A stretch of 64,000 nucleotides of DNA from Lepidodermella squamata (lineage: Eukaryota > Animalia > Gastrotricha): NCBI GenBank assembly GCA_047495785.1, contig JBLDXI010000009.1, positions 4,774,001 through 4,838,000 on the forward strand. Direction: 5' to 3'. The notes beneath the pieces were generated by a model. The model worked only from the letters and a program-made list of their open reading frames with translations, was not told the origin of the DNA and made no database searches. Positions 36,016 through 63,343 of this stretch are shown piece after piece. How positions within the stretch are numbered: position 1 is the stretch's first letter; each line of letters starts with the position of its first letter. Position numbers and translations under genes: made by a program.

Positions 36016-36201
36016 GATAATGATTTTTGAGACTGCTCATATTTATAATAAATCAGAGAAAACTATCTGCAATCTGCATGGGAACGGCTAATGCGTTTTA
36101 TTAATTGATAACGAGGTCATCAATGTGAAAAGCAGTTTCTAGAGTTGATAAGGAAGAGAACCGAGTGGTCAAAACTGTCATACTTCAGATTCATCAGAGA
36201 A

Positions 36202-37266: not shown

Positions 37267-37677
37267 ATGATGTACTCAACTTCAATTATTTGCTTCGGCG
37301 TCATTTGCGCCGCACTCAACTTCCAACAATCGCACTGCTACGGCTACGTTTATGGAAAGCTTCATCACAGACAAGTCACCTCAACAAAAGCTCCGGAGCA
37401 GCAAGCCCCGTTAATTTTACTGCGATCAGGAGGCCAGCTGCCTTCAAAACCATTCGTTTTCTCACCAAGTCGTAGGGTTTTCGAAGAAACTAAGAAGTTG
37501 GACGATAAGACTGTCGAGCTGTGCTTCCGATGCTTCGAAGTCGAACCTATCGAAGTAATTGGATATCCTGCTCAGCCAATGGACCTTCAAACTTACAAGG
37601 CCATGAAATGCATTCAGAAGCCGATAAAGGAGCGACTTATGTTTCTCAAAGGCTCCGGGTGCTTGAAGAGAGAGTGA
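37267..37677 (+). CDS. Small secreted protein, 4-Cys subfamily, member 1
   Basis: Signal peptide; CxxC ... C-x16-C; AATAAA at ~37709. Confidence 0.8.
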   Translation: MMYSTSIICFGVICAALNFQQSHCYGYVYGKLHHRQVTSTKAPEQQAPLILLRSGGQLPSKPFVFSPSRRVFEETKKLDDKTVELCFRCFEVEPIEVIGYPAQPMDLQTYKAMKCIQKPIKERLMFLKGSGCLKRE

Positions 37678-38546
37678 CATTATTAGGTATCGGTTAATAC
37701 ATGTCTCAAATAAAGCGGAAATAAAAGCATGATGCAGATGCCGCTGCCTAACTTTGTGTTCGCTTAATGGCAGTTTGCAGTTTACTGAGTTTTTCAAAAT
37801 TAGGAAAATAAGTCATCTGCTAGTGTTCATGGGCTACATATAAGGAATACTCCTCTGCTGAGAGAGTCGTTTGTAAACTTCTTGAACTGCTTTGCCATCG
37901 TCTTACAGTGGGTCCATGAACCCCTACGGAGTTTGATTCATGATTCACGATTGTTCTATCTTACTCAACTCTTCCTGTATCGGTGAATAATGTTTCTTAC
38001 GGCCACCTGACACCTTTTCATTCCCGTCTAATTTTCGGCGCAACAATAGTGTTACCAGTGCATCATTGAACCGATTGAAAGTCCATTTCTATAGCGCACG
38101 CTGATTGTTCAAGCATAGATGTTGTTATGACTCCCGCATGAAACAATGTGGTGACCTGATTTTTAAACCTTGAAAAAACTGAACGTCTACGACGGTCGAC
38201 AAGCGAGTCGTATTGTGCCCGGAAAGATATTCGAGGGGCTATTCTGTTGACCAATTACTCAGCCAATCGGACATGTCATCGACAATAAATCAAATGCCGA
38301 AGCGTCCCAATTCGTCCCCACAGATTAATGATAAGTTCCAAGAAGTTGGGCTAATCACTTGAAACAAACCATCGTGATAAGAAACAAGGTGCAAACCGCT
38401 AGCCTTATTTCTCATTATCTATTTGTGGTTAATTAGATCAATTATTACATTTGTTCTGCCCTTTAACTTACGAAGTAATTAGTAAATGACCTTTATTTTC
38501 TAATAAGCTTAATTCAGCATTAAGTAGTTGCCTCATTTGTTGAAAA

Positions 38547-38933
38547 ATGCTTATGAACGCCTTTCTACATTTTGCCGTGTTGCTCATCCTCGCATCCTCG
38601 AATTGCCTCACGGCAGTGGAGCAGCCGAAATCTTCGAAGATCATTCCAATCTCCCTTAAGAACGACAATCGCCCGCTGGGGAATCCAATATATCCTGGTA
38701 AGCAGTTTTGGCGGTCTTTTCTCACGTGGATAGATAAGCAGACCCGTCGGAGGTGTGGCGAATGCTATGGCGTTGACAGTATTCCATCGCAGCATTTCGC
38801 TGAGATCTATCGAAAGTTTTACTTCTTCAAAGCACTTCACGTCGAATCGATGCTCGCGTTTGATTGTGCGAATCTTCCTCTCATCAAAAGGGTATCCATG
38901 CTGAAAAGCTTGAACTGTCAGCTGTTATATTGA
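38547..38933 (+). CDS. Small secreted protein, 4-Cys subfamily, member 2
   Basis: Signal peptide; CGECYGVDSIP ... CANLPLIKRVSMLKSLNC. Confidence 0.85.
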   Translation: MLMNAFLHFAVLLILASSNCLTAVEQPKSSKIIPISLKNDNRPLGNPIYPGKQFWRSFLTWIDKQTRRRCGECYGVDSIPSQHFAEIYRKFYFFKALHVESMLAFDCANLPLIKRVSMLKSLNCQLLY

Positions 38934-40562
38934 GCTATTCATTTATTTATTCATGAGCTATACATCCAGGTGATAAAATCGTTGGAAAGCTCAGCTGAAT
39001 GTTCAGTTATGTATTGGAAATAAATTCAACCGTTAACCCTTTCATGGCGGAATTATTAAATTGCGGGAGAAAATATTTGACCGCAGTTAGGGGTTTCAAA
39101 GGCCCTGATCTCGATTTTGAAATCCGTTTGTCTCTATCTATCACCGTTATGGCTGTACAAAAACTGGCTGAAGTCGTCCTATCCGCCCAGCTGATTGCAG
39201 GCGATTTTTCGAACATCCTAAGTTTGTGTCAGGTGCCTTCAGCTTTGGAATTTTAAATTCTAAATTTCTCCCATGAATGTCCCTAAGATTCTCCCTCACT
39301 AATAGGTATCACTGAAAAATTTAGTTTAAAAGCGGCTCAGCATTCAGGTCAGAATTCAGTTTTTCCAGTTTTTTTGTTGTATCAAAAATGATCAGAAATT
39401 CCAAGCTAAAAAAAGGAAATTTCAATGTCAGGTTGACTATTTTAAAATTGCTAGTGTGCCCTGACCGTGCAAGATAACGGTTTCCTGGTCTTAAAACCTT
39501 GTAGCCAATATTGAAAAGCAATATTCCTCACAAGGGCGATCAAGAATTCATCAAATTCAATTTTCTGCAGATTTTCAAAGTCGAAACTCCGAAATCGATC
39601 GAGATGATTCATCAAAAGTTCTCGCTATCTTGGTCGCCTGACCACACGGTCAAACGCATCCGACAAGTGATTCAGAGGGCTTCTCTACTTCAACCCAATT
39701 TATCTCAAATGACCTGCCCCTTAATTTCGACGGGGAAAATGGGGCATTTTCTTCCCCATCTTAGCGCTCATCCGACCGCAATTTTCTGACCGGTGAATTG
39801 TTTTCGGTAGATAAAATCGGAAAGAGACACCTTTTGAACAGTGATCCTTGCTGCTTTCTGAGGTTTGAGAAATTCCAGAGAAATAACTCGAAGAACGCCG
39901 GGCTGGAGGTTGCCCAATTAGAAATACTACCGTGCCAGATCTATCTTTTTTATCTATCCTTCGATATTCCTCGACTCCTTCTTCATTGCCGCTGGAGGCA
40001 ACATGTGTTCCACCTCCTGACACATCCTTGGGGTGAACTTGATAATTGAACAGGGCAATGCTTCGGCAATGTTTCAAAGGTTCGCTGCAGTCTATGTCTA
40101 AGTAAACCATTTCTCATTCGATTTCATGCTTTTAAGCTATTTTCATAGCAATGGAGTTCTGATGATTCAACATTTTCAGAGTGAACTTTTGAGACACCGA
40201 CACTTCTCGTGATCGATTCGCAGTGGACTGTGCTAATTTTAGTAGCATCAATCGGTCGCCAGCTGTATACTAAAAAGGACATCCATTCCAAGCAATTTCA
40301 CTAGAGTGCTGCTCATCTTCCATGTTGCCATACTATACGTCACGCATTGCGTATCGTCGCAGCAGCTGAATTAATATGACAAGGGTAGACGGTGGACGCT
40401 TCCACGGTGTTAAATTTAGCACGCGGCACGTGGCGCTAAAAACAACGTGGAAAAAATGCGGCGTGACGTGGGCGCAAAAACCAATCTCCTTAATTTGATC
40501 ATGAAAAGATGCACGAAAATTCACCATCAGACAAACATATCGCAATATTTGATAAACCTGAA

Positions 40563-40922
40563 ATGGTCATCCTGCCCATCATGGCTATAACTCTACAAAT
40601 CCTCTTAATCCTAGCTTCAGTCACTCTTGCATATCCAAAACCGAAATTTGCAGTTATCGACAAACGCGAAGAAGTTATTGTACCGAGCCGGCAGAACCAG
40701 CTATTCCGCTTCTATTTCTCAAACCAAATTCAAGATATGACAAAAGACGCTTGCTTCAAATGCTTCACCAGGCAAGAAGACTATTCGGTTCAGCATAAAT
40801 ATTTCCGATTCGCAACAGCTGGCAATAATGTGAACGACAACTCGAAAGCTACAAGATGCTCACTACTGCCTGTCGCTAATCGTATGGCATTGCTTCAAAG
40901 CGCTAAGTGTCCGGTCTTTTGA
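40563..40922 (+). CDS. Small secreted protein, 4-Cys subfamily, member 3 (start 40563 or 40581)
   Basis: Signal peptide; CFKCF ... CSLLPVANRMALLQSAKC; AATAAA at ~40986. Confidence 0.8.
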   Translation: MVILPIMAITLQILLILASVTLAYPKPKFAVIDKREEVIVPSRQNQLFRFYFSNQIQDMTKDACFKCFTRQEDYSVQHKYFRFATAGNNVNDNSKATRCSLLPVANRMALLQSAKCPVF

Positions 40923-41057
40923 GACAATCATACCTCTGATAATGTAATTGAATGTGGCATATTTTTCTAACAAGATAGGATCGGAAATAAAAGACGCATA
41001 TGACACGCGAGTTTTTTGTACAAAATCCGGTGATTTTTATCAAAGTTCAAGTTAAAA

Positions 41058-41411
41058 ATGAACATATTCGCTACATCAGTTGTGATTTGCCTGTTATTGG
41101 CTCAGTGCTACTCGTTAAGCGAGGAGGACGTCGTTGATTCTGCCAAAAAACTGGACGAACTTACGCCTCAGCAGCCTGCTCGAAAACTACGAAGCTCCGT
41201 GCGGATTTGGCTGCAAAAGCAGACCAAGGAAGCTTGCGCCAAGTGCTACAACGTGGCAGCTATCCCTGGTAAAGACTACGCTGCCGTTTACGAGCAACTG
41301 CGCTTCTTTAAGGGGCTGCACGCCGACATGGCCAATGCGTGGCATTGCGCCAATCTACCGCTGTACGCTCGCATCAGATTTTTGAACCACGAAATGTGCC
41401 AGCTCACATGA
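41058..41411 (+). CDS. Small secreted protein, 4-Cys subfamily, member 4
   Basis: Signal peptide; CAKCYNVAAIP ... CANLPLYARIRFLNHEMC; closest to member 2. Confidence 0.85.
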   Translation: MNIFATSVVICLLLAQCYSLSEEDVVDSAKKLDELTPQQPARKLRSSVRIWLQKQTKEACAKCYNVAAIPGKDYAAVYEQLRFFKGLHADMANAWHCANLPLYARIRFLNHEMCQLT

Positions 41412-43144: not shown

Positions 43145-45958
43145 TCAATTTGGTCCCAAGTAAAATAGGAGAGGCTTCCGTTTGGGTTCCATCAAACCGT
43201 CGAGCCGAAATGACTTCCTGTATGAAATTGAAATTATTTCAACGATGTCTGAAACATAAATTTCAAGCGTACAAAATTGCCGTGTAGCGAGTTCGAATTT
43301 TCGAAGATGTGGCTGCAGTCAGAGCTTCGGAATGGATGGTCCTAGCTAGGCCGGCTAATTCGATAGACGAGTAGCCGGTGTGGTGAGCAGCCACGCGTGA
43401 CCATGCGCGGCCTGGCTGAGCGAGGAGTAGAGCCAAGCGGAGACAACCAGCGGCTAGTCTGCTCTCGAGTTCGGTACAAAATCGAGGGACCAGGAGACAA
43501 GATTCGAGGAAAAACCGGGAAAGGTAGAAAATTTCGACCGGAACTTGCAAACACTAAAAAATCAGAAAATAGGTTTCCAAAGTTGAGAAAATTTTCAAAA
43601 ATTTTCAAAAATAGATCTGAATAATTTTCTCATAAATATCAAAATTTTCAATTTTTTCAATTCGAGATCAAAATTTTTTCAATTTTATTACTTTACGAAT
43701 TTTGATGAAATATATTGGGGGAAATATCCCGTGAAAGTTGGAGCTTACATTGACATATCGGACAAGAAAGTTGAAGCTGAGCGGAAAAAATAGTTTGAAG
43801 TCATTTTTCCGCAGCAACTCGAGTTCCATTTCGAAAATTTCTTCAGGCAAATGAACGAAACCGTACTGGCTTTGGCCGAGTTCTAGTATCGACATTTTCA
43901 CGCTTGACCGGTTTTCGTAGAGCTTCAGACCGATGAGAAAGGCAGCGCATGCAGCTAGGCAATACAGGGATGGGTTCAGTCGCGAATTTGTTTTGGCTAC
44001 AGCACGATCGAGCAGTTTTACGGCAAAATAAAATACCTGAAAATGGTATATAATTATTGAAATTCATTAATTCAAAAAATTTAATAAATTCAAAATTTTG
44101 AAGCGAAATTTGCCGTTCATAAACATTGTTGAGTTTTCTTGAGACAAAATTTCTTCTCCGAAATGCCTTCACAAAAATCGATTTTGAAAATTTTCGATTT
44201 TTTATCGATTCAACGCCATCAAAATTTAAAATTCTCTTTGTGTAGCAACCTCATGGGGCGTCTCGTACTGAGCTCGCATAGCCGAAAGCCATTCAACAAC
44301 ACCAGCTCGCAGCGTTTCTGGCACATCGAAGTGGTGCCCGAGCAGCGGCGAATCGTCCAGTTTGAAGTCGGTCTCGCGTTGCCGAGACGTGGCGATTTGC
44401 AGAGCAGCGTAGCGAGGCATTTCAGCGTAGTCGTTCTTGCGAATGTTCTCCGCATCGAAATCGAACCAATCGGCGTCATTCTTCAAATCGCCAACCTGCT
44501 CGCCGCGAATACGATCGTCCTCGTCGAGAATTGCTTGGAAAATTGACTCTTGAATAACAGGCGGTAGATGGCCGAAATCACTGCGAAATGGAAATATACC
44601 ATGGAAATTTCATAAATAATAATTGAATTCTCAGGCCCTGAGCCGTAGGAACAGATGAAATCGGGTTAGGAATAGAAGCAGAAACAAGTGGTAATTCATA
44701 AAATCAGCATTCATCCATCAAGGTTGGGAAAATCTTACGCCGGTACCAAATTTCATTTAATTCAATACATAACCATTTTATTCGTTTTTTAACTGGTTAG
44801 GGCTAGGGTTAGGGTTAGGTTAGGGTTGAAGACTGGGTCTTCAAATTGGGGATTTGGAACTGTTTGGAATAATTTGGTACGGAATTCAATGATGTTTGGT
44901 ACTGAATTCAATAATTTGGTAATGATTTCACTATATCCCTCAAGGTCAGGTGACTTTCCAATTATTTTCGAATAAAATTACTTATAAATAATATCCAATG
45001 ATTTCGATTGATTTCCAGCTGAGGATAGAAAAATGTCTCCATCTTCCAAAATTATTCGAATTACTAAAATTGAAACATTTTTTTGAAAAATTCTCCCTTT
45101 TTCTAAACTTTCACTCAATTTTTCATGATTTTCCAATCAGCATATATATATATATCTCCTATAATTTCTCCCCTACAGGGTGTTCAAGAAATAATAGCTA
45201 GCTGTTTAGCAAAGCGCGTGCCAAAAGCAGCAATGCTATTTATAACTAGCTATTATTTCTTGAACACCCTGTACAATATGGCCATGTCTATTCCGATAAA
45301 TTTAAACAAATTTCTTAACTCGAATTCAAATTTTAGATTTCAAATTAAATATAAATTCGAGTCTTGCTTTTATTAGGACAAAATTATAGAAAATTGTGTA
45401 ACAAATTAATTCACTAGAAAAGCTTGTTCAATTTTTTGCTAGAAGATTGCTGATTCACCATTCGAAATGTGGATAAATTAGCATAAAAATCAGCATCGCT
45501 TATTGCTCCTACGATTTGGTTAAAAAAAATTGGAAAAATGAATGGTGGGCGTTTCGAGCTAAACTCTTGGAATTCGGTTATGTTAACAGCTACATAATAT
45601 TCAAAAATCTAAAATGGCAATAATTCTCAAGATATCAATTGGGAAAACTGAAAAATAATAACCAATGGTGAATTTTTAAAAATAAAACTAACCTGATTGT
45701 GATGGCAGGAATGATTTTAGATTTAGATTGTTGATTCTCCGGACCATCAGCGTCACTTCGGTCATAACGCAGGTGTTTTCCAGCGCCAGGATCGTAAGCT
45801 GAGTCATTGAGACTTTCATCCGAATTTTCGATCGCAATCAAATTTTCGTGCTCCTCGGCAATCACAGCCAAACCAGGCGGGCGACAGGCAGGTGTGAATT
45901 TCGTGCTCGATTTCTTACTCGGAGCCAGCCGCTTATTTTTATTCGAAATCGATGCCAT
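43145..45958 (-). CDS. Divergent A/B-type cyclin (4-5 exons)
   Basis: Spliced reading gives LRAGVVEWL..E|VFYFAVKLLDR..AAFLIGLKLYE..IFEMELELL..F.L..PLSFNFL.RY (cyclin box) and RFFLE..SRLAAGCL.LA..W..HTGYS (C-terminal cyclin fold). The final exon 43218-43145 is tentative; without it the stop is at 43263. Confidence 0.8.
44795..44827 (+). repeat. Short degenerate (TTAGGG)n tract inside a small intronic element
   Basis: GGTTAGGGCTAGGGTTAGGGTTAGGTTAGGGTT flanked by inverted GTACCAAATT/AATTTGGTAC words. Confidence 0.7.
45176..45271. mobile_element. 96-bp Tc1/mariner-type MITE in cyclin intron 1
   Basis: TA|CAGGGTGTTCAAGAAATAATAGCTAG .. CTAGCTATTATTTCTTGAACACCCTG|TA; perfect 26-bp TIR and TA TSD. 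Confidence 0.9.
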
Positions 45959-46713
45959 GTTGTTAAGAATTGTTGAAAAAAATCAGGTGTTAACCTTGGT
46001 CGGTTGTGATTTAAAATGTTTTCGAAAACGTTTGCGGAAGCCTTGTTTTAATAATGGCGAGATAATCGCATGAAAAGCTGCTGTCGTTTTAACGAGCCAC
46101 ATTTTTCTGGCGGCGCGTGCGTGACCCAGCACACGCGACCTGACTGGTCATAAAAATGAATGGGGCTAGTCATAAAAGCGAGAGAAGACAAAAACGGCTC
46201 ATCATTAAGCGCGCGCTACGTTAAAATAGGTCGGCCACTCATTAACAAATACAACAGCGATTCCGGTTTGCGCTGTGAGACAGGCCGGATGTTGAGGGCC
46301 ATAGAAGCCAGCCACAATTGACACAGAAAAACAGGAACTTGAAAACGTGCGGTTTGATTACTACCATAAAATGTCGCCACGATGAGACACATTTTCAAAA
46401 AAGGTGGAAAATGTTAGAATTTAGCAACAATTTGTTTCGAAAATTCCTCCTTAATTAAAACACATTATTTTCGTATTATTAATTATCAAAATAAATCGGA
46501 TTTACCTAAATTATTTTCACGAGGAGTGGCAATTTTTTTAGAATTATTTTATTTTATTTTTCTCGAGTACGAAATGCAGTTGGACGTGAATGAAGAATTG
46601 TGGGAGTAATTACTCATCACGTATCAGCCAGGTGTGACTTACACTTCACGCCTTCGTAGTACTTCGCCCTCATCAACTCGACAGGCAACAAAGATGAAAT
46701 AACTGCTAGTTGA

Positions 46714-49523
46714 ATGGCAGCGTTTAACACAATGCTGAACTCAAATTTGAACTATCATCTCAGCATTGCCAAGATTTTTCTATTCCTGTGTTTAACTGCT
46801 CCGAAATCAGCAAGTGTTATTGTTTCGAGAATCGGATCAAGTGAGTTGTGAATGTTATTCATTGCTTACCTAAAACTAAAAATTGGCTTTAAAAATTGAT
46901 GATTAATAATTTAAATTTGATTTGAATTTTTTGAATTGTTCTTTATTTTCTTACCATTTTTCAATTATTTATTAAAAAAATAGAATCGAATTTCAAATAA
47001 AATTTGACACGATTTTTTCAATTTTATGCATGAAATTATAATTTTTAGAAATCATTATTTTAAAATTTAAAATGAATAATTATACAATTTTTCAAATAAT
47101 TTTACATTTTTTGCTCTACAGACTGCTTTGCTGATCTTGAGTGTGGCCCAAATGAAGAGTGTAAGCGACTACCTGTGTGGCCACCCTGCCGATTCGGGAC
47201 ATGCCAATGCAAGCCCTGCTTCATGCCAATATCCCTCGCCGCTAATTTATCAGCGACCATCGACAAATCAGCCTATACATCGTTGATGACGCAACAAACT
47301 TGCCAACCAGTCAAAATGCGCCAATTATGTGTGAATCGGTCGACGTGGTCATGCGACAATTCGTGCACGGGTGAAGCGGGCGAGTTGTACCCGGAGAATA
47401 CGATGTGTGCGAAGGAGCCTGGCTCCGACGTTGGGACAGTACGATGCCTCAATGCAACGTGCTACCGGGCGAATTTGCGCGGCCGGTGTGAGCGGTTTTT
47501 GAATGTCCCACGCGGTCAAGCGTGTCGGGCTGATTGCGAATGTGCGGCTAATATGGCTTGTGTAGCAAAATGCCGATGCCGCCCCGGTCTCAGGTACAGT
47601 CTGTCATTTTGATAAGCTTGAAATGTATCCTAAATTCTAGCTATAAATTTCGTGTCATCAATTCGTACCCTATATTTTAGGGATTTCGTATCATGATTTT
47701 CGTTGAAAAAATCGAAATTTTCCGATAAAACTTGGTTCGTAGTTTTCGGTATTTTTTCGGGGTTTGGCAATTTCTTTCAATATTTTTTGATAAACAAGGT
47801 TAAATTGTTGACGATTTTTTGATAAAATTTGATGAGATTCAGACTGAAAAGATTGGAAATAAGTAATTCTAGAATTTTATAACCATCTCATTTGGAATTT
47901 ATTATTTTACCTCGAAGGTTTTTTTTATTGGCTTCGAGGTTATTTCGAAGCATTCGGGGATTTTCTGAAATTAAAGGGATCAGCATTGGAGGTTTTCAAT
48001 CGCTTGCAATTTTCAACTGACGGAAATTCCAATTTTCCCGACGGGAATTTATTCGGTAATTTTCTGGTATTTTTCCAGTTTCCGGATTCGTATGTATCAT
48101 TGTTGTAGCCAGATTTTATAATTTATTACTAAATTTATCGGCTTATTTGAAAATTTGCCCACATTTTCCAAAGATGGGACGGTCGCACGTGTCGTCGGCC
48201 ATTGATTGGCGACCTATGCTCCGCCCACTCTGACTGCGCTACAGCTGAACCCTACTCGCAAATGGTTTGCCAGTCGAACGGCCGTTGCGGCTGCGCAAAC
48301 GGTTACTTCCCGTCTCAGGTCGGCTACTACGACTCTGAACTCAACGCTATAACGTCCCGCAACATCTGCGTACCCGGCATGTCGATTATGAACGCAACGA
48401 AAGGCTGCGCCTGTACGAGAGGCCTGGTTTCACCTAATCGCTACAAACAAGCCAATGTTTCGTCGCTAAATGACTTGCCGAATGGGCCTGGTCCGGCTTT
48501 GATTTGTGGCGATGGGACTTTTTGCTACGCCTGTCCGGATGAAGAGAGCACGGTTGTGCCTGGGGGCGGTCGGCAATACCTACCCAGCTCAAGTGGGACG
48601 TGTCGCTTGCTGCGAGGCGAGATGAAGCATAACGATCGTAGGTTCCACGTTCAACCCGTTGTTCTTAGTACCTTCTATCAACTTCTTTATAGGTTGTCTT
48701 GCGAATGCAAACTCTCCAGCTAGCAACACTGGACCTCAGATTTCAAGACTCGGCGAATGTAAGTCACTTCGAAAATTCCTTTCTCTCTTAGGTTACAGGG
48801 TACTTGAAGCATTTCTTTTCTAATCTTTAATTTACTGCTTTTTCAGTGTGTACATGGAACTTTCAATGCGGTATGAACGAAGAATGTGACCGTCCACCAA
48901 TCGATCCCGCCTGTCGGTTCGGTCGATGCGTCTGCAGAAGCTGTTTTGGCGCCAACGCAGCAGGTCTGTGCTCTCCAGTTCGCGTTCTTGGCTTAGGCAC
49001 TCCGTGTTCTGGAGCTGGCAACGAATTGTACCCAAGTGGTGCATGGTGCGACGGATCTGTAGTTGTATGCGACCTGTACCACCGAGCTGATCGAGCTGGA
49101 GAGAATTGCATAAGGTCTGAGCTGTCATTTTCGACGTTCGGATCGACGTGTCGAGCAGATTCCGACTGTGGCGATGGTCTTTTTTGCGATGCAAGAAGCG
49201 AGAGTCAAGAATGCGACTGCCCGATCGATACTCAGATTTGGAACGATTCGTTAGCTCGTTGCGTCGAGCGAAAAATTGGCGATCCTTGCTCGAAAAATGA
49301 ACACTGCGCCGGCATTCAGATTGTTGGAGATTACCGGCTACAACCAGTCTGCTCGCGGCTTTTCAGAATTTGTACCTATGGTTTGGATATGAATCGGTCT
49401 GTGGACGCGATTGATCCCAATAAGTGTGTGAGGTGTCCTGAAGATGCAGCTGCTAGTTCGGGTCAATGTCGTGAGATCACTGGAAGCTTGTTGGAGGTGG
49501 ATGCTTACGATAGGTGTGTATAG
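46714..49523 (+). CDS. Secreted Cys-rich protein with EB-module-like repeats, internally duplicated (5 exons)
   Basis: Signal exon 46714/46732-46840; exons 47122-47593, ~48174-48637, 48692-48757 and 48847-49523 join in frame; G..C....C......C....C.C..G patterns. Confidence 0.78.
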
Positions 49524-50066: not shown

Positions 50067-50348
50067 ATGCGCCTAATTTATACTACGCTGGTCGTCGTGT
50101 CGTTACTTGGTGGTTTTCAAGCCGGCTATACTCCTGATTTCTTAACGAAACTAAGGAAAGTCTCCGGTGGACACTGCGCATTTCTTTTCGGCCTTGACTA
50201 CATTCCAAAAAAGGCTGATGAGAGCACGAATAGATTTTTCGACAAGACTGCTTTGGTGGCGAAACTGGCGGAGCGATGTGCCGCGATGTCTCTGAAGAAA
50301 CGCCTTCGTTTTATAACCTTAGTTGGTAAAGCTTTGCAAGGCGGTTAA
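50067..50348 (+). CDS. Small secreted basic protein, 2-Cys subfamily, member 1
   Basis: Signal peptide; CAFLFGLDYIP ... LAERCAAMSLKKRLRFI; AATAAA at ~50367. Confidence 0.85.
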   Translation: MRLIYTTLVVVSLLGGFQAGYTPDFLTKLRKVSGGHCAFLFGLDYIPKKADESTNRFFDKTALVAKLAERCAAMSLKKRLRFITLVGKALQGG

Positions 50349-51716: not shown

Positions 51717-52094
51717 ATGCAAACCTCACGCATAGTCATAGCAATTCTACTAATTGCTGGTATTCATTCTTCGATTGCCGGGAACTATATGGCCAAGCTG
51801 GAATTGTTATCCCGGGAGCAATGCGGCAAATATTTCGGATTGGACTTCATCCCAACAATAGAGCTGCTAAAAACTGCAGTCGACACGGGTATCTTGAACA
51901 AAAGCGCGATCACACTGCTCAGACTGGCTTACCGATGTGCTTCTCTCCCACTGAAGAAGCGGCTTGAATTTCTGAAATTGATTAGCAGATCGATCAAAAC
52001 TAAAACATCCCTGCCGCGTTACATTGATAAGCGCAACAAACCGCACTTTCAAGAATCATTGGCCAATTCCTTTCGCGTAATACCGTTATCATAA
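51717..52094 (+). CDS. Small secreted basic protein, 2-Cys subfamily, member 2
   Basis: Signal peptide; SREQCGKYFGLDFIPT ... LAYRCASLPLKKRLEFL. Confidence 0.88.
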   Translation: MQTSRIVIAILLIAGIHSSIAGNYMAKLELLSREQCGKYFGLDFIPTIELLKTAVDTGILNKSAITLLRLAYRCASLPLKKRLEFLKLISRSIKTKTSLPRYIDKRNKPHFQESLANSFRVIPLS

Positions 52095-53242: not shown

Positions 53243-53563
53243 ATGCAGGTATCACGCTTTCGCTTTGAAATGTTGGCGCTGTTATTGATAGCCTATAGCG
53301 TAACTTCTTCACACGCTGGTGGTTATGTAGATAAGCTGAAGATGTTATCACGACGGCAGTGCGCAGAATATTTCGGGCTAGATTTCGTCCCGACTAAAGG
53401 CCTTCTCAACGTTGCAGCGAAAACTGGACTTTTGAGCGGCAACGCTATCAAACTGCTTCGACTAGCACTGCGATGCGCGGCTCTTCCGTTGAAAAAGCGC
53501 CTGGAATTTCTGAAGCTGGCTAACAAACGTTTGAAACTAGAATTTCATCCACCTGCAAAGTGA
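53243..53563 (+). CDS. Small secreted basic protein, 2-Cys subfamily, member 3
   Basis: Signal peptide; SRRQCAEYFGLDFVPT ... LALRCAALPLKKRLEFL. Confidence 0.88.
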   Translation: MQVSRFRFEMLALLLIAYSVTSSHAGGYVDKLKMLSRRQCAEYFGLDFVPTKGLLNVAAKTGLLSGNAIKLLRLALRCAALPLKKRLEFLKLANKRLKLEFHPPAK

Positions 53564-55317
53564 CATATGGCACTCCTGATTCCTGCTATTTAAGCGTAGA
53601 TATGCAACTAGTTTTGTGTAACTGTTACCAGTTTATCTGGTTAAAATGTGAACTCGTAAAATAAAAAGCTTCGAATTCTCATAATACAGCGTCCAAATCA
53701 CGTTATGAAGTTTTACTCTAGTAGATTTATCGCAATTACCGATACTATTTAAGAATGTCACTTCCTTGGCGGAACCAGTGAATCGACCATGAAAGAGCAG
53801 TTCGGTTACAGAAACAGGAGCTTCATTAATTTTGTTAATTATCACTTGGGATTGTTTGCCAAGATGTTTTGTCAAGTTCTCAAAACGCTTCAGAGTTTAG
53901 CCACCGAATTTTCTTAATCGCTCTCCGATTTTGTTAGTGCGTCCGAGTGTATAACCATTAGCCAGTGAACGCAATTTTTAAGTTCATTTTGAAACATGTT
54001 TAGTAATTTCAGAACTGTTTTCTGCGGAGATACAGCTTTTCTAGAGTCAAACCTTCGATCTCATCATTTTCTTGGGTCAGATGGAAACGTTTAAAATGAT
54101 TAGGTGCCCTGCTAAAGATCTTTTGTTTATTTTGCAATATGTGATATCAGCAAAATCATTTATTCAAATGCATAGTACATAAATTCATGAGATTTTGTTT
54201 GCGGAGCTAAATCTATATACTGCAAGCAATTTACATGATGAGGCGTAGGCATCCAACACGTGCGTGAATGCTAACGTCTTTTCCTAACCTGCTAGAAAAC
54301 TGCATTCACATCTAACATCGGCTAAGATACCTAATTGATACATATAGTACTGATTAGCGCTAAAAGTAGAGTGGGGGAAATTATAGAACAATTTGGCTGA
54401 AAATTAAAATTGATTTAGACCGGCGTTTGCACTGCACGGCAGGCATTAAACGTCCGTAAAAGACTTAAAGAGTGGGAGAACGCCGAACACAGGGGTTGAA
54501 AATCTGTGCCGAACAAAAATGTGAAATCGAATTGTACTGACGTACTCGGCTGTTTTTATGCCAATTTGTTCGTCCTCGTTCGGAAATCTTAAATTCAAGG
54601 AAAATAATTTCAGCCGAAAATTGAACATTTGTGAAGGCTGCGGGAGTCGAACCATCGTTCCCACAGTCCTTACCCAGTCACTCTCACCACTAAGCCATCT
54701 ACTGAACAGAATCAGCTTTCGCAAAAAGCAAGCGTGAATCAGGTCTTGAATCCATTCTCCAGCTCCCCACTCCCAGCTCAGTAAATCTGGCTGGATACTC
54801 ATCTTTTTAGCCGTCTTTTGAGATCCCCTATCGACACATCTAGCATTTTTCATTTGAATCAACGGCGGGAATGAAACGTCCGTTAGAGAGTTGTAGATAA
54901 AAATATTCCCTTCCAGAGCAACTGTGTAGGTTTTTGTGATACTCTCAACTCGTGTATAAAACGAGTTAGAGATGGCTCTGCAACTTGAGATGGCTATGGC
55001 GATGTCTGTGAATAATTATCCTAAGAGTCACAAGGAGTCACCTGATGTAATAGATGCTGCGGCCTTTGAAAGTTACTTCAACAGTCATGGCTTAAATTAC
55101 TTATTATCCCAGTGGTTTTAGGCCAACATTGAAATTTTAACGATGCGTTACATGTTTACGTGTTCGTCGGACCTTTTCGTTGGATAATGAAATCGGCATA
55201 GCTAATTCCTAGTGTAATATGATTCTTATGCCGAACTTAATCGAGTCTAATTGCAATTACGCTGTGAGCGCATTTTCCAAATATTTCGCTTTTGATCGCC
55301 CATTTCACAAGTTTGCC

Positions 55318-55662
55318 ATGGCTAAATTATGCATTTTAGTAACGTTTTTTACAATTGCGCTCCTATACAACGCAGATTGTCAAGAATCTTTGAAAAGTGA
55401 GAATAGACAGTTTTCAAAAAGGCAGTGCGGAAAGATATTTGGCTTTGATGTCATGCCGACCAGTCGTTTACTTGATACTGCTGCGAAACCGTATATTTTA
55501 GGCATAGATAGTAATACGGATGCAGCTGTTCGTCTCGCTCGAAAATGCGCGGCCCTACCCGAGAAGAAGCGAATCGCTTTTATACGTCTGGTCAGCGAAG
55601 CGACAGATGATGGCCGAAATCCGATATCGATCAAGTCATTTATGAGACAATTGAAACTATAA
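55318..55662 (+). CDS. Small secreted basic protein, 2-Cys subfamily, member 4
   Basis: MAKLCILV signal peptide; SKRQCGKIFGFDVMPT ... LARKCAALPEKKRIAFI; AATAAA at ~55728. Confidence 0.85.
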   Translation: MAKLCILVTFFTIALLYNADCQESLKSENRQFSKRQCGKIFGFDVMPTSRLLDTAAKPYILGIDSNTDAAVRLARKCAALPEKKRIAFIRLVSEATDDGRNPISIKSFMRQLKL

Positions 55663-58083
55663 TCTTTTTGATTGTTAAAGCTATATGTAGTTTCAACAAC
55701 ATTAGGGTTGATAAGTATATTATTTCAAATAAATACGCTTTTCTTACTTATTAACGTCAGTTTTTAGAGCTTTGAAAGTTTCCTTGAGCCTTCAAGCATA
55801 GCTGAGAGTCATGCGAACTTAGCGAACTCAGGCCTTCAAATGAAACCGTAGAAAAGTGACGATATGATCGTTTCGTTTTACTACCTTCCATTTTTGAGGT
55901 TTTACCTTTGATCCTGTTTCTCAATAGGTTCCCAACTCCCGACATCAGACGACCTCCGAAATTGTCGATTGAGTATCGTTTTCGCGTTTTTCAATTTTCA
56001 TTCCATTCTCAATTTTAAAGCTGGGAACCAACTAAAAATTCGACCATCATCAAGGCCAGAAAGGAACCTAAACTGCTCAAAGGAACAATGGCAGAATATC
56101 GACAATTTTGACCACGGAAATAAAAACAACACATTTTTTACTCAATTTAATTGGTTACGATATAACGAAACCTCGAACAATTTAGTACGGGCGCGAAATC
56201 GCCTATAACAAAAATTCGCTACGAGAATAAAGTCGTATACATTAAGATAGTTCTGCTAAAGCTGAAAATAGTCTTATGATTTCCAGAAAAAAGCCTGCAA
56301 ATTTCCCCATTTTCATCGGGGTTGTAATTTTCCCAGAAATCGATCGTCGAGACGGACATGCCGAATGGCTCGTAGACAGTTATTCTGGAGCAAGGAGGCG
56401 GAGCTGATTCCTCGTAGCGACGCAAAAGAAGCAACAACGAAACTGTAACGGAACTGCTTCACCAGTACTCGAAAAGTGGGATTGAACTTAAACCTGGGCT
56501 GCCTTTCTGAGAATGCTTTAACCTATGAGCCACCAAGGCCGACACACACTCCATGTTCGCTTACGCGGTTGTAAGTGGACGAGGATGGGAGGTGGACTCG
56601 CTCCCTGTAGGAACAAGCTAGTGCCAGGTAAGCGATACGGCGCCATCGGAAAAACAGCCCTGACCGGCTAACAACCGAGCGGAACCATGAACAATTTCGT
56701 GCACAATGATTCACGGAAACAATTTAGCGCCCAGAACTTGCAAACAATTTAGCTTTAGCAAAAAGACTCCGATTTTTTTAGTTCGATCTCTGAAACCTCT
56801 GAAAAGAGTTCGCCTTTCTTGTTAGCTTAAGAATGCGCACCATCAAATCTTAGAATTTTTCTGCAAGGCGAGCAATGGCACAAAACAAGGTCAGCTTAAC
56901 AAGTACTCAGTGAACGATGTCAAATGTGACCGTGTCAAGGCGCTATCATGGTAAGGTGTCGGAAAGAATCTTCTAAGATAATTAGCAACGGAAATCGGAG
57001 CTTTTTGAACATTCCACATGCCTACGCATTACGCATCTTATCGATCTGAGTCATCTTGAAGCGGAATGGCGTCCTCCAGGCTATGCGTATAGCCTTACAT
57101 AGCTTGGTGTAATCCGCGAATAATTTATTGATCGACAGAGGAGTTTATATTGGAAGTAAGATCAAGAACGGTATAGTTCAGAAAAGAGCCTTGAGGCAAA
57201 ACTGACCAAACTGGAGATTGAACAGACGCTTTCGGTTTAACAATCTCGCGGAATTAACACTTTAACTGCCCAAAATAGACTGCGAGATCCGATATTTGGA
57301 TCCAAATCCTGGGTCTGTCGAAAAGTCCTTTTTCCGGTCAACGATGCGTCGTAGGGCAAAATGTAGGCCATGACCTGGCGTTTCTTTTGACACCGAAGAA
57401 ATAGCGTACGAAAGATATTATACAGAGCATAGCAACGTTATGGGCACCGTATTGAACCTTTCAACAAAATCTGAATGATTCTAATAAAGGAACATTTGCA
57501 GATCAAAGCAAGTCGATAAAGAACAGCCCACCTTTCACGTGATCTGCCAATGCCAGCCCCCTACTCGTAATATCCCCGCGAAGTTGCCGAACATCAGCTT
57601 ATTCAGAAAGGAATTATCGCGAAGTTTCTCTAATTCGTAGCGGCGTTTCATAGGCAGCTACAAAAGCACTAGAAAAACGTTCTTTTAGGTTACGGCATCT
57701 TTTAAGAAGATGGCACTGGAACCTACATATTCCAAGTCATGTAGCTGCAGCTGGGCATCGGAAAATATAGCGACGATATCGATATTTTAAGAAGCGAAGA
57801 AACTAATCCACCGAAGAAACACAAGATGCTATAATGTACATTATTGTAATTTGACATTATTTGAATTTCAATCGAAGCATTGATCGCTCATTATCCTTAT
57901 GTCGTAAGGTCAAACGTGTGCTTTTCAACGATACGTTCCATTATAACAGAACCTTTCATTGGATTTTGAAATCGGGATAGCTAATTTCAGTGTAATATGA
58001 TATTTATCCCGCACGCAATCGAGTCTAATTGCAACAACGCTATCAGCGCATTTCATGTTAATCGCTCATTCCGGACTTTTGCG

Positions 58084-58440
58084 ATGGTTAGATTATGCGT
58101 TTTTCTAACGCTAGTTTCACTGGCGCTTCTGCAAATCGCACGTTCCTACGACTATTTGACGAGTATGAACAGACAGTCGTCGTCAAAAAAGCAATGCGGA
58201 CTGATTTTCGGCTTCGATGTTATCCCGACCAGCCGCCTAGTCGATACGGCTGCGAAACCGTATATATTGGATATATTGGATATAGATAGAAACACGGAAG
58301 CAGCTCTTCGCCTTGCTCGAAAATGCGCATCTCTTCCACTGAAGAAACGAATCGCTTTTATTCGTCTGGTGACCGAAGCGACAGATGATGGCCGAATTCC
58401 GATTACGATCAAGTCATTCATGAGACGATTGACATTATAA
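58084..58440 (+). CDS. Small secreted basic protein, 2-Cys subfamily, member 5 (recent duplicate of member 4)
   Basis: Signal peptide; QCGLIFGFDVIPT ... LARKCASLPLKKRIAFI; upstream region also duplicated; AATAAA at ~58512. Confidence 0.85.
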   Translation: MVRLCVFLTLVSLALLQIARSYDYLTSMNRQSSSKKQCGLIFGFDVIPTSRLVDTAAKPYILDILDIDRNTEAALRLARKCASLPLKKRIAFIRLVTEATDDGRIPITIKSFMRRLTL

Positions 58441-59792
58441 TCGTCTCCATTTCATTGTCAAGCCAATTGATCAAATACAGATGTACCCATTGGCAATCCT
58501 TGATCCTGTACAATAAAAGCTTTCCGTGAAAACTCGCTGGTTTGCATTTTCATGGCTTATTAAAAACTCCAATCATAAGATAATTGTTAAATGCATTCTA
58601 ACTTCTAACTTGGTCATTGGAAACTGATCCTTGATCATTGATCCATTCCCTTTGTTCTATAAATCTACCCAGCTACTCCGACCGAACAGCATCATTTTAC
58701 TTCCTATCCCCATATTCCCTGATTTGCTAGATTTTTCACTTTTTTTGTGTCAAGTTTAACAAGCGGCTACCTCGCCGAGTGCTTACTCAACCCCAATTTA
58801 AAGACGTGAGATAAATCCTTGGCAGGGCTGTTCAAAGCTTGCGAGGTATATGCAACAAACAAATCATCAAAGGCGCCTGAAAATCAACGCTCAGAATACT
58901 AAGCGCTGCGAATAGGCCGTAAGTTGAAGCAGCCAGGTGGATATTTCGCAATCGAGGGTGAAGTGACAACATATGCAACAATGAGTGCAAATGCACCAAC
59001 AGCCAACATCTGTAGGTGCCAGGGCGTACAGAAAAGCATCCCCAGCTCGGCCAGGCGGGAGAAAAAAATGAACATTCAGCCTTTAGCCCCCTAAAACTTA
59101 ATTTTAAGAGGTTTTAGAGCGTTTCTATAGAAGAATCTCCGCAATTTACTCGCTTCGCTCGTTTTTTGGTTGAAATCATCGTTCATAATGGGAAATACAG
59201 CTGCTATAACATGTTCTGCTCCAAGAACCAAGATCGCAATGAGATTGCCACCTTGGTCGTACAGAAGGTACAGAAGCGGAGCCCAAATTCAACAAGACAA
59301 CTACTTTGCAGGTGTTTTTACGTCGAAAGGGACCACAATTGCTGCTATTTAGCCATTTAGCCTGGCGCAACAGTCTTCTAAAAACGTTTGCCTTTGTTTT
59401 TCACCCTGACTGGCGCTTCCTGCTTGCTGCGAACGACCAAATAAGCTCGCATGCCTTGGATAAACAACCAAATTCATACTTCTGTGCTCGGCTGGCGCAA
59501 TAAGTTGCCGCATAACAAAACGAACACGTTTTACTCACGATACAAATATGTTGGAGGGACATTAGACTTATAATTAATCAAACGAATGAAAATACCTAAA
59601 GTCCATGATGTCTGAGAGAATAACAACATGAATTCCAACCTACTCCTCAATTCTATCTCCATCTGTAATGTCTAAATGAGCTAAATCTGCAGGAAATCAG
59701 ACACCGCCAGCATTTCATTTTCAAATCTGTCTTGCCCAATGCCCGTAATAACCATAGACCTAAAATTGTAAACCAATAACAACTTACTAACG

Positions 59793-60110
59793 ATGACCTT
59801 CAAAATAGCCTTTGCCGTATCTCTGTTATTGAGTATAGCATGCTCAGATGAAGATCACGATTTCTACAATCAATCGGCACTGTCCCGCAGGGAATGCGCC
59901 AAGCTTTTTGGTTTGGGCTCGATACCGACAAGTAGGCTGTTGGATGCAAGGATGGAAAATGGAGGCGCAACCGCTGCCATGAGACTTGCGCGTAGATGTG
60001 CAGCTCTACCGCTGCAAAAACGCATCAGATTATTAAAACTATACGGCGATGCATCAAGAGCTAGCATCAAATATACTTTCATTAAATCTTTCCTGCGGCA
60101 ATTGAATTGA
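59793..60110 (+). CDS. Small secreted basic protein, 2-Cys subfamily, member 6
   Basis: Signal peptide; SRRECAKLFGLGSIPT ... LARRCAALPLQKRIRLL; IKSFLRQL tail shared with members 4 and 5. Confidence 0.85.
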   Translation: MTFKIAFAVSLLLSIACSDEDHDFYNQSALSRRECAKLFGLGSIPTSRLLDARMENGGATAAMRLARRCAALPLQKRIRLLKLYGDASRASIKYTFIKSFLRQLN

Positions 60111-61398
60111 TTGCGCTGTTGAAATTCATGATCCTTCAAGATTCTACGATTGGCTTTTGGTAAGTTTATAAGTAAGCTGCTCTCTCCTGGGCGATATAAT
60201 GCTATAAAATATTAATTTTATATATATGTTGTGTCACTGATGGGAAAATGATTTTTTGTTGACTTCTCCTACACGGGCTCTTGGCAGGTTACCACCGTGA
60301 CTTACTCGGCAGGGCGTGTACACCGGAGTGATTTATTTTCCTCAGCACGCCTGTTTGTTGTTTTCCCACTGTTTCTCCCTGTTTAATTTTTGACTAAGTT
60401 AATATCATAAGTGCTGTCAAATAAAGAGAATTTTCTTATATACCAAAAAAGTTGGCAATTCAAGTTGACTCTTTTAAATGCGCTCGCCTCGCTCTGTACT
60501 TATTTTAATCATTGTCGAAAACTTATCTGAATGGGTTGCTGAATCATCAAACGGGTGGGTACACATGGAGGTCGTAACTTTTCCCTCGGTTAGCGATTCA
60601 GAAAGGATTCAGAGACGTGATCTTAGTCCAGCTCAAACCCTCTCAAAGAAGAGACCAGACCCGCATGCTTCCAATAAATTATTAACGCATCTTTTCCTCC
60701 GTCATCTATAACTACTTTGAGCTAAATAATTATTGACCATTTCAGCTGCGTGGTGTATTTATAGGGAAACTTGAGTTTGAAACAATGAAATGATATACCT
60801 CTTCATTAAAAATAAGCTCAAACCGGCGCCAAGATAATCTTCCTGTCGGGGCCTTTGCTCTCCTACTAAATTTGCGCAGAGATTGAAACCTTCAGGGAGA
60901 AATTCAACTTAGCATCAGCTTAGACCTTATCAGCATCTGGCCTTGGAGACACGTCCGTTGAATAACATGAAAACTAAACTACTTCAACCTTCAACTCATG
61001 CGTTTAAATCATAAATGAGTGATCTCTACGTTTTAAATTAAGTGAGCTTAGATTTAGACTGAGCTGGCTGAGAACAAATGACACTTCGAACTCGAAATGT
61101 TCAAGCGTTGCTCAATCGTGGGTGGATCGTCGCGTCCAAGTGTGAAAGTCCAAGTTTCACCCACGTCAGGTGTAGCTAGAAATTTCAGGCAACATCCTGC
61201 AGGAATGTCATCATTGCGTCGCGAGCGTGGAGGTTTCCGATAGCCTACGCATACGAATCTTGACAATGCAACAGGAAAGTGTGAAATTTTATGCCTTATT
61301 GGAACCTCTAATTTTAACTACGCACCGCATTTAAGAGGGTCTTCAACAGCAGATACTTAACAGTGTACATTTGTAAAACAACTTGCCCGAGTATAATT

Positions 61399-61776
61399 AT
61401 GACTAATAGCCTTAGCAGTGCTGCAATCATTGTGCTTTTAATACTAATTACCGCTGATCTATCGAAAACGCATGACTTCTTGACACAGATGAAGCAAGTC
61501 TCGCGGAAGCAGTGCGCCAAACGTTTCGGGCTTGACTTCATACCATCAACCCGAATGGTGGAGGCTGCGATTGAGTCAAAATTTCTGGACCGGGTTACGA
61601 TAACAGCGCTTCGAATGGCTCGGCGATGTGCTAATCTTCCTCTCAAAAGACGGCTGAAGTTCTTGCGCCTTGCTGACAAATTGAGAATATCGCGAAACCG
61701 AACGCTGACAGTCGGAGAGAATGGCAAATCAGATTTCAAACTGCGATCGGACAATTCAACGCTGGGCGAAAATTAA
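61399..61776 (+). CDS. Small secreted basic protein, 2-Cys subfamily, member 7
   Basis: Signal peptide; SRKQCAKRFGLDFIPS ... MARRCANLPLKRRLKFL; AATAAA at ~61808. Confidence 0.87.
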   Translation: MTNSLSSAAIIVLLILITADLSKTHDFLTQMKQVSRKQCAKRFGLDFIPSTRMVEAAIESKFLDRVTITALRMARRCANLPLKRRLKFLRLADKLRISRNRTLTVGENGKSDFKLRSDNSTLGEN

Positions 61777-63010
61777 CTTTGTTGTGATGTCCTTTTCGTT
61801 ATATTCAAATAAAAAGGTTACCTCACTTTACGATTTGGTTTGAAGTTTATACTAAATTCATTTTTCGAGTATTTTGCCCTACTGGGCTGGAAAAGATGGA
61901 TTCGTAAGAAAAACCTAGACTTGCAGATGATCGAAGTTCTATCAAGCTGCAGCAGAAGTACCGTGGTAACCGTGGACATCTCAGTAGGCAAAGTCATGGT
62001 AAAAAACTAGAAAGCCACTTGGGGACCCTTTAGCCATAAAATTGGGTGAAAATACCATTTAATTCAGAGAGGGAAGTAGGGCAGCAGAACCGCTTAGGAT
62101 GAGGAGATTCGACGTGAGGGTCCCCCTTTGGTATTATTTGACTGAGGTCACTTTGCTGGCGGATTGAACTGGTAGGAATGATCCCTATCCTTACTACAGA
62201 TACAGCGCAAAACAGTTCTAGTTCGGGGATACCATCTTCGCCAAATTTTGCGTGTTGCTCTGATGGTCATAATGATGGCATCAATGGGATCCTTGGCAGC
62301 ACGCGATTCTATCAGTTGATTCATATAGTCTACAAAAAAACACATCCACCAACCCGACCAGCCCCACATTCGCGACCGACCCAGCAAAAAGTAGTTGGAC
62401 TTTGACACTGCATATCGAGACTAAGATGTCCGAGCATCGCGCACAGAGCTGCAGGTTTGTAAGAGAGCAACAAATTGAGAAATAGCGCACATCTTATTTT
62501 CAATTTTTGGGAATTATCTTAGTTTCCCAGTTAGCTATATTTCTATTTATCATATTATGAGTTGTGCAGTTCGTAACGGCTAAATGATTGTTTGCACTTT
62601 CAAGTTTGACGTTTGTCTGTTTGGTGAAACTGGACAACTTCACCGCTATTATACTTCGAATCAGGAAGCTAATCCAACTTTTTGCTTGTCACTCACTCAG
62701 CCATTTGCCATTTGATGAAAGTGGGCGTTAAGGCTTGTGCAACCATTGACCCAGAATAGTAACCCTCTTCGCTACTGAATGCAAAGAGCGTCTGCTCTCT
62801 AGAGCCTTCCTCCATGAGCAAATGACACAATTGTTGTAGCCGGAAGCACCATGTTGCTGCCTTGGGGAGTGTTTCGATGTTTTCGAGACTGGCGATCTTC
62901 CTGTGAATGAAACTGAACGCCTCTCGCATTACATAAAGTCTATTCTAAGCTTGTTATCGAGTTTACTCGAACGATCCACCCAGCCATTCAGAAATATTGT
63001 TGGGCTTTTC

Positions 63011-63343
63011 ATGGCTTGGCTATTAACAACAACTTTCTTGATCATCGTAGCTGTTCACATTCGCCATGTAACATGCAACGGCTATATTGACAAGTTGAAA
63101 CAAACATCTCGCCATCAGTGTGCAAAATATTTCGGATTAGACTTCGTACCAACTCGGCAATTCATCGAAAAGCTGTCTGAATCAGGCGTTGTTCAATCAA
63201 GCAAACATGTTGTCATCAGGGGACTGCAGCTAGCAAGGCAATGCGCCGCGCTACCACTCAAAAAACGGCTTCAATTTTTGCAGCTTGTAGGCAGTTCGAG
63301 CAAGGCGGATCGGCAAACTCTCCAGCTGAAAGCTGAGCGTTGA
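63011..63343 (+). CDS. Small secreted basic protein, 2-Cys subfamily, member 8
   Basis: MAWLLTTTFLIIVAV signal peptide; SRHQCAKYFGLDFVPT ... LARQCAALPLKKRLQFL; AATAAA at ~63449. Confidence 0.87.
   Translation: MAWLLTTTFLIIVAVHIRHVTCNGYIDKLKQTSRHQCAKYFGLDFVPTRQFIEKLSESGVVQSSKHVVIRGLQLARQCAALPLKKRLQFLQLVGSSSKADRQTLQLKAER

Follow-up and report, generated by a model that had tools for sequence, protein, structure and literature searches.

We analyzed a window of 64,000 nucleotides (nt) of DNA from the gastrotrich Lepidodermella squamata (contig JBLDXI010000009.1, positions 4,774,001 to 4,838,000 of the forward strand; positions below count from the first letter of the window). Between 37267 and 63343 it contains exactly 12 intact, single-exon open reading frames (ORFs), all on the plus strand, whose products are small proteins with a hydrophobic N terminus. 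An annotation made from the letters alone (the sequence-only reading) had placed 12 intronless plus-strand genes at the same coordinates, and every one of them was confirmed, each with an ATG and a stop of its own. We consider it very probable that they are independent, single-exon members of one tandemly duplicated family, in an animal with a compact genome, and that each encodes a cleavable-looking signal and a ~70-residue four-helix domain. The genes do not make up the one continuous array that had been described: they stand in two blocks, split by a cyclin gene and an EB-like cysteine (Cys)-rich gene.

A preferred ATG was chosen for each gene, and the lengths given here are counted from those starts. 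The first block, at 37 to 41 kb, holds four genes for a form with four conserved cysteines (the 4-Cys form). Gene 1 (37267-37677, 136 residues) is the most divergent member of the family; a long pro-region separates its signal-like segment from the domain, its cysteines are a CxxC, a third Cys, and a C-terminal Cys, and an AATAAA lies 32 nt past its stop. Gene 2 (38547-38933, 128 residues) is the window member nearest to the relatives found elsewhere, gene 3 (40563-40922, 119 residues) is also divergent and has a further in-frame ATG upstream at 40509, and gene 4 (41058-41411, 117 residues) starts 135 nt downstream of gene 3. The second block, at 50 to 63 kb, holds eight genes for a basic form with two of those cysteines (the 2-Cys form): gene 5 (50067-50348, 93 residues), which branches earliest in the 2-Cys clade; gene 6 (51717-52094, 125 residues), with a long C-terminal tail; gene 7 (53243-53563, 106 residues), whose domain was used for the 2-Cys structural model; gene 8 (55318-55662, 114 residues), with further in-frame ATGs at 55219 and 55228; gene 9 (58084-58440, 118 residues), with one at 57997; gene 10 (59793-60110, 105 residues), with the shortest spacer of that form between its two conserved blocks; gene 11 (61399-61776, 125 residues), the most basic member (isoelectric point [pI], 11.1; net charge, +13); and gene 12 (63011-63343, 110 residues). 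The array may extend past the window, because gene 12 ends 657 nt short of the window end.

A hydrophobic N-terminal stretch is present in 12/12 proteins (best 10-residue Kyte-Doolittle mean, 2.5 to 3.7); these stretches are probably signal peptides, in keeping with the earlier assignment of one to each gene. An in-frame stop lies 6 to 174 nt 5' of the ATG in all 12 genes, and an AATAAA polyadenylation [poly(A)] signal lies 19 to 161 nt past the stop in 11 of them and 310 nt past it in the remaining one. Just 16% of random positions have an AATAAA within 161 nt, and the placement across the family has a P of about 2e-8. Since each ORF has its own upstream stop, ATG, signal-like start, stop, and poly(A) signal, the 12 are separate single-exon transcription units, and the possibility that they are exons of one large gene is ruled out.

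DNA likeness among the copies is confined to coding sequence, except in the pair of genes 8 and 9. Their coding sequences are 80 to 82% identical, and a 65-nt stretch upstream of each (55211-55275 and 57989-58053) is 85% identical, slightly above the coding sequence. This stretch sits 43 to 107 nt 5' of the preferred ATGs and holds in-frame upstream ATGs; it could be a conserved leader, a promoter element, or an N-terminal extension. Among the upstream regions of the 12 genes, no shared 7- to 9-mers rose above random-window controls.

When all 64 kb were scanned in six frames with the family profile, these 12 genes were the only matches, with no relics, extra copies, or minus-strand copies of the family anywhere in the window. 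Because every member is part of the full profile, that scan is circular, and it was therefore repeated with leave-one-out profiles searched against 1606 six-frame segments of the window. Ten of the 12 genes were recovered at E ≤ 6e-12 (gene 2, 8e-19; gene 4, 1.2e-16; gene 5, 6e-12; gene 6, 2.5e-25; gene 7, 1.4e-26; gene 10, 2e-19; gene 11, 1.5e-23; gene 12, 4.6e-23). The weakest values were those of gene 3 (1.4e-4) and gene 1 (2e-3), the two members that had been called looser. A core pattern, C-x(28-42)-A-x-x-C-x7-R, matched 11 of the 12 family ORFs and 0 of 1583 other six-frame segments. Gene 1 lacks a match because of its shorter spacer: its Cys-to-Cys distance is 29 residues, within a range of 29 to 43 for all 12 genes and 34 to 43 for the 11 that match. 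The two literal motifs given in the sequence-only reading are valid as a consensus but not as strict patterns, block 1 matching 4/12 genes and block 2 matching 5/12.

Four of the 2-Cys genes have long ORFs of 84 to 146 residues on the opposite (minus) strand (55380-55634, 58152-58421, 59870-60139, and 61314-61754). They are probably a by-product of codon content on the sense strand.

Synonymous sites are saturated in most gene pairs. The youngest pair, genes 8 and 9, has a synonymous divergence (dS) of 0.76 and a ratio of nonsynonymous to synonymous divergence (dN/dS) of 0.25; the next-youngest, genes 6 and 7, has a dS of 1.7 and a dN/dS of 0.16; and all measurable pairs fall between 0.16 and 0.31. 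The duplicates are old and are kept under purifying selection. As claimed previously, all 12 ORFs are intact despite strong divergence. By arithmetic from the composition of the window, a random 110-codon frame at 41% GC stays open with a probability of ~0.001. Twelve intact ORFs combined with saturated synonymous divergence are therefore not due to chance, and the genes have been maintained.

These data also bear on the proposal that the ORFs are nonfunctional, either chance reading frames or decaying copies of a repeated element. No product of these ORFs is on record in public protein collections, as that proposal would have it. However, 12/12 frames have stayed open through saturation at a dN/dS of 0.16 to 0.31, a selection signal that effectively refutes it; the placement of poly(A) signals (P of about 2e-8), the confinement of likeness to coding sequence, and the existence of intact relatives of the same anatomy in another organism (described below) likewise argue against it. 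We regard this explanation as hardly credible.

Conservation is concentrated in two blocks. When the 2-Cys genes are pooled, the two blocks have ratios of nonsynonymous to synonymous differences per site (pN/pS) of 0.30 and 0.34, against 0.59 for the spacer and 0.55 for the N-terminal helix, and the mean share of the commonest residue is 0.76 to 0.77 in the two blocks versus 0.35 in the spacer. The blocks thus evolve at about half the spacer's pace, and the spacer varies in length as well, which fits the earlier description of a fixed scaffold with a variable insert. Three residues are invariant in 16/16 members (the 12 window genes and four relatives from outside): a first Cys, a second Cys, and an Arg eight residues after that second Cys. 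The Ala of A-x-x-C is kept in at least 90% of the 16, and a Pro is nearly invariant.

The two forms differ in their cysteines. In the 4-Cys form, helix 1 ends with a CxxC, helix 3 ends with a Cys, and a further Cys lies near the C terminus; the 2-Cys form keeps only the first and third of these cysteines. The second and fourth cysteines are both present in 8/16 members and both absent in 8/16, with no mixed cases. This all-or-none distribution is what would be seen if those two paired with each other, and likewise the two invariant cysteines. One disulfide would then link the ends of helices 1 and 3 in all members, and a second, in the 4-Cys form, would run from the CxxC to the C-terminal Cys. 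The forms differ in charge too. The eight 2-Cys genes encode strongly basic proteins (pI, 10.0 to 11.1; net charge, +8 to +13) with C-terminal extensions of up to ~40 residues, whereas the four 4-Cys genes of the window are milder (pI, 7.9 to 9.1; net charge, +1 to +4), so that the Lys/Arg richness ascribed to most members holds in full for the 2-Cys genes. One outside 4-Cys member is likewise basic (pI, 10.4; net charge, +10). Homology of the two forms is supported by hhalign, which aligns them over 63 columns with 97% probability (E = 8e-11); the profile built from the four 4-Cys genes of the window recovers 8/8 2-Cys genes, and the one built from the eight 2-Cys genes recovers two of the 4-Cys genes.

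Three-dimensional modeling with AlphaFold2, from alignments of 12 or 16 sequences, predicted a compact four-helix domain of ~70 residues for both forms, with predicted local distance difference test (pLDDT) scores of 89.6 for the 2-Cys domain (gene 7) and 93.3 for the 4-Cys domain (gene 2). The modeled helices span about residues 2-16, 25-34, 39-53, and 56-70. An FG-x-D-x-IP motif occupies an eight-residue loop following helix 1, a Pro-containing turn precedes helix 4, and the invariant cysteines fall at the C-terminal ends of modeled helices 1 and 3. If these cysteines are paired as we infer, the two blocks would meet at one corner of the model, which would bring the end of helix 1 and the FG-x-D-x-IP loop together with the end of helix 3, the L-P-L turn, and the invariant Arg that opens helix 4. 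Helix 2 and the loop behind it would form a variable end. The features by which a new family would be recognized (a signal-like start, a ~70-residue domain, a Cys at the end of helix 1, an A-x-x-C at the end of helix 3, and the Arg) were thus all found. Hydrophobic moments of helices 2 and 3 were well above shuffled controls, and those of helices 1 and 4 were no higher than the controls. Amphipathic periodicity, claimed for the proteins previously, stands for helices 2 and 3 but not for helix 1 or for helix 4, which carries the segment (LKKRLEFLKL) quoted as its example.

Comparison with known families returned no valid match. No Pfam model gave a valid match to any of the 16 members at E ≤ 10, and for ten members nothing was reported at E ≤ 1. 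A sequence profile search of the PDB gave chance-level matches only, and word-indexed protein searches with the 12- and 16-member alignments gave none. In Foldseek searches of the PDB the best match to the 2-Cys model had an E of 3.6, with template modeling (TM) scores of ≤ 0.45, and the 4-Cys model had no match whatever; against BFVD the best E was 1.5. The conclusion that the family has no known fold is provisional, because small helical domains are hard for Foldseek and the structure searches covered the PDB and BFVD. The description of the family as unrecognized held up across Pfam, the PDB sequence search, and Foldseek.

Several small secreted protein families were considered and rejected as homologs. 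Insulin/relaxin-like peptides have a six-Cys A/B-chain pattern; the number and spacing of cysteines differ here, and there was no Pfam match. Mature secretoglobins are secreted proteins of ~70 residues with four helices, cysteines near the helix ends, and large tandem arrays in some genomes; they are not known outside mammals, and their disulfide-linked dimers enclose a ligand cavity. Membership in the secretoglobin/uteroglobin family was rejected, with no Pfam match and no such fold among the Foldseek matches. Saposin-like proteins have six conserved cysteines and three disulfides, and the caenopores are a cationic, multigene antimicrobial family that numbers at least 23 genes in C. elegans (PMC6780910). 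Saposin-like antimicrobials (caenopores/SPP, amoebapores, and NK-lysin/granulysin) resemble the window family in being small, secreted, cationic, all helical, disulfide bonded, and multigene, and they are the best functional analog for a role in host defense; they differ from it in their cysteines, of which the window family conserves two or four, not six. Membership was rejected on that count, in the absence of any Pfam match at E ≤ 10 or any saposin among the Foldseek matches. The Turandots of Drosophila, secreted helical proteins of the humoral response that form a small family with 4/8 genes in one genomic cluster, bind anionic lipid via Arg/Lys residues (bioRxiv 10.1101/2023.07.24.550293) and show that proteins of this kind can protect rather than kill microbes. 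Their size and Cys content are unlike those of the window family, there was no Pfam match at E ≤ 10, and the comparison is one of analogy only.

The proteins could also be small lipid or ligand carriers, in which the disulfide-stapled bundle surrounds a hydrophobic ligand, with secretoglobins and plant lipid-transfer proteins as functional analogs. A secreted domain that is compact and four-helical, a conserved putative disulfide, two helices amphipathic above shuffled controls, and tandemly amplified genes would fit such carriers. Nevertheless, neither the sequence nor the fold searches linked the family to uteroglobin/secretoglobin, lipid-transfer, or odorant/chemosensory proteins, a bundle of 70 residues has little space for a cavity, and the extreme charge would be left unexplained. 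We therefore judge a carrier function to be quite improbable.

A different possibility is that the proteins are secreted signaling ligands (cytokine-like, pheromone-like, or prohormones), with the conserved corner serving for receptor binding or processing. On this view, a convertase would cut the eight basic proteins at the Lys/Arg-Arg before helix 4 and so release the basic C-terminal helix and tail. The Arg is present in 16/16 members and is preceded by a basic residue in 8/8 2-Cys genes, and a cut in the 4-Cys form would leave two chains held by the second inferred disulfide. Small, secreted, helical proteins with predicted disulfides suit a ligand, as do highly conserved blocks under purifying selection, which are expected where there is a conserved partner. 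On the other hand, a basic residue precedes the Arg in 1/8 4-Cys members, and the dibasic site is therefore not ancestral; moreover, the site falls within the opening turn of modeled helix 4, packed in the domain (pLDDT above 90) and not in an exposed linker. No Pfam hormone or cytokine model matched: Toddler/ELABELA, another small, basic, secreted peptide, stayed below its cut-off in one member of 16, over the signal peptide. Twelve paralogs of one ligand would also be unusual, though not unknown. We consider a ligand function rather unlikely.

Specifically, the Toddler/ELABELA model (PF22050) was the sole Pfam model to score below E = 0.01, with 20.4 bits against a 27-bit cut-off, for gene 11 only. 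The match spans residues 11-43, from the signal-like segment through the basic residues that lead to the first Cys, and we rejected it as compositional and not indicative of homology.

Relatives in other genomes were sought by running HMMER exhaustively against 1.84 billion cluster representatives, standing for about 15 billion proteins. Five proteins were found at E ≤ 1e-3, and four (P0001, P0003, P0004, and P0005; profile E = 4e-10 to 6e-4) were accepted as true relatives. They are 119 to 137 residues long and have a signal-like start, the same four-Cys pattern, basic domains, a single exon, and a poly(A) signal. Their identity to the window genes is 20 to 35% (gene 2 matches P0001 by tblastn at E = 5e-10), and none is of the highly basic 2-Cys type. 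All are unannotated and come solely from ENA metagenome assemblies, three samples in all, on compact contigs of 38 to 40% GC with animal-like genes (Cys-loop receptor, ubiquitin E1, alkaline phosphatase, and EB-like genes). Two of them form a tandem pair on contig L004, at 4265-4654 and 5164-5541. Scans of Joint Genome Institute (JGI) metagenome contigs and of viral contigs found none.

The fifth protein, P0002 (709 residues, E = 2e-5), was rejected: it is encoded by a 231-bp tandem repeat, each unit of which matches 20 profile positions at ~11 bits. Its locus, at 10001-12130 of a 2.4-Mb metagenome contig (L006), does not yield the listed protein under the standard or bacterial code, and an organism that uses another genetic code is a possible source of the contig.

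A neighbor-joining tree with 300 bootstraps was built from the window genes and the outside relatives; it is unrooted in effect, and the other genome is sampled as fragments. The eight 2-Cys genes form one clade (99% bootstrap support), within which adjacent genes are sisters in two cases (genes 6 and 7, 89%; genes 8 and 9, 100%). Genes 2 and 4 also pair (92%). The 4-Cys genes of the window were monophyletic in no tree; they interleave with the outside relatives, and several 4-Cys lineages are therefore older than the split of the two organisms. From these sequences we conclude that the 2-Cys clade appears to be a local, derived expansion; the other genome is seen as fragments, so loss of 2-Cys genes there, or a failure to sample them, is possible. 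The earlier suggestion of a lineage-specific family accordingly fits the eight 2-Cys genes but not the 4-Cys form, which occurs in at least one other animal. In the history that we consider very probable, an old 4-Cys form with its putative second disulfide predates the split of the two organisms, and in this genome one lineage lost that Cys pair, turned highly cationic, gained basic C-terminal tails, and reached at least eight copies.

The surroundings of the family provide further context. The window holds about 30 genes in its 64 kb, at 41% GC, and by gene content (WSC plus C-type lectin, FAR-17a/AIG1, cyclin, and EB-like genes) its DNA is animal, with no sign of viral or human DNA or of a known toxin; no tRNA genes or Rfam families were found in it. 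Between the two family blocks lie a multi-exon cyclin gene on the minus strand (about 43200-46000; Cyclin_C, E = 2e-10) and, on the plus strand, a multi-exon EB-like Cys-rich gene with a weak Pfam EB match (47076-49523), which is not a family member. Directly upstream of the array, on the plus strand, are two FAR-17a/AIG1-like paralogs (34538-34987 and 36145-36739), the second of which is split across two overlapping frames, suggesting a short intron. Farther upstream, all on the minus strand, are genes for a secreted-looking protein of 216 residues (32101-32751) and a Thr-rich, mucin-like membrane protein (30202-30993), neither with a Pfam match, and a single-exon gene for a 659-residue membrane protein with WSC and C-type lectin domains, a Ser/Thr/Pro-rich stalk, and then a transmembrane segment (26274-28253). 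A second tandem family, on the minus strand at 1062-23157, comprises seven copies encoding secreted proteins of ~250 to 270 residues with subthreshold ConA/Laminin-G-like Pfam matches (1062-1814, 5435-6241, 9525-10257 as two ORFs, 14325-15155, 17450-18196, 19841-20191 as a partial copy, and 22372-23157).

The EB-like gene recurs beside the family elsewhere. Its match to the outside contig that carries the tandem pair is collinear by tblastn (47076-49523 versus L004 7153-8977; E = 1e-12 and 3e-11), and the EB-like gene there (5927-8977, minus strand) lies within 400 nt of that pair. Since the EB-like gene adjoins the family in both, the linkage has been kept across two genomes whose family proteins are ~30% identical; it may reflect retained gene order or functional pairing.

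Functional pairing with a large EB-like Cys-rich secreted protein, which linkage in two distant genomes could reflect, would suit a role in abundant gland or reproductive secretions, as components or modifiers of an extracellular coat (egg envelope, cuticle, mucus, or adhesive) or as gamete-interaction proteins, with the cationic domain binding acidic glycoproteins. High positive charge suits sulfated or sialylated glycans, the products of neighboring genes include lectin-like, mucin-like, and Cys-rich extracellular proteins, and tandem amplification suits high-output secretory products. The linkage may, however, be just retained ancestral gene order, and the strong positive selection usual in gamete-recognition proteins was not seen here, in a test limited by saturation. 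On balance, we think such a secretory role unlikely.

The function that we favor is that of secreted cationic proteins that bind anionic surfaces, in host defense or surface protection; we give this reading a probability of roughly 0.35. The proteins would act outside the cell through electrostatic binding to microbial envelopes or to the animal's own anionic lipids and glycans. The conserved corner would serve as the nucleus of the fold, and the variable end and the tails would tune target preference among the paralogs. The case for host defense is made by charge, secretion, amplification, secreted and lectin-like neighbors, and the analogy with caenopores and Turandots. A cationic host-defense class calls for proteins that are secreted and net positive; signal-like N termini were found in all members and net charges of +8 to +13 in eight.

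Several observations weigh against host defense or surface protection. Strong conservation of the blocks under purifying selection is explained no less well by a conserved specific partner, for instance a receptor or processing enzyme. The roles put forward in the sequence-only reading (antimicrobial, toxin, pheromone, or gamete recognition) are suggestions drawn from charge, secretion, and tandem amplification. Arms-race effectors often show positive selection, and no region had dN clearly above dS, although the test is weak because synonymous sites are saturated. Helices 1 and 4, which bear much of the charge, are no more amphipathic than shuffled controls, so a classical membrane-lytic mechanism based on amphipathic helices is not favored. 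Finally, the 4-Cys members of the window are mildly basic, and high charge is therefore not a property of the whole family. Taken together, the identity of the family and an anionic-surface mechanism are the best explanation we can offer, at somewhat less than even odds.

The family is new as a sequence family, and a tandem array of small secreted proteins is a familiar kind of locus; taxon-restricted arrays of secreted genes are common in invertebrate genomes. The family bears on no long-standing open question. Its 16-member profile offers a means of annotating family members in newly assembled genomes, and its near-absence from ~15 billion proteins shows the extent of unannotated extracellular biology in small, undersampled invertebrates. 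If confirmed, it would extend the secreted effectors of animals by a new sequence family and perhaps by a new small helical fold, and would document an evolutionary step in which one disulfide was lost alongside a gain of charge and gene amplification. A fuller account, tentative and as a whole rather doubtful, is that this is an undescribed fold family, old in a poorly sampled animal lineage, in which one branch would have traded a disulfide for charge and expanded into new host-defense or surface-protective effectors that may work with the EB-like protein.

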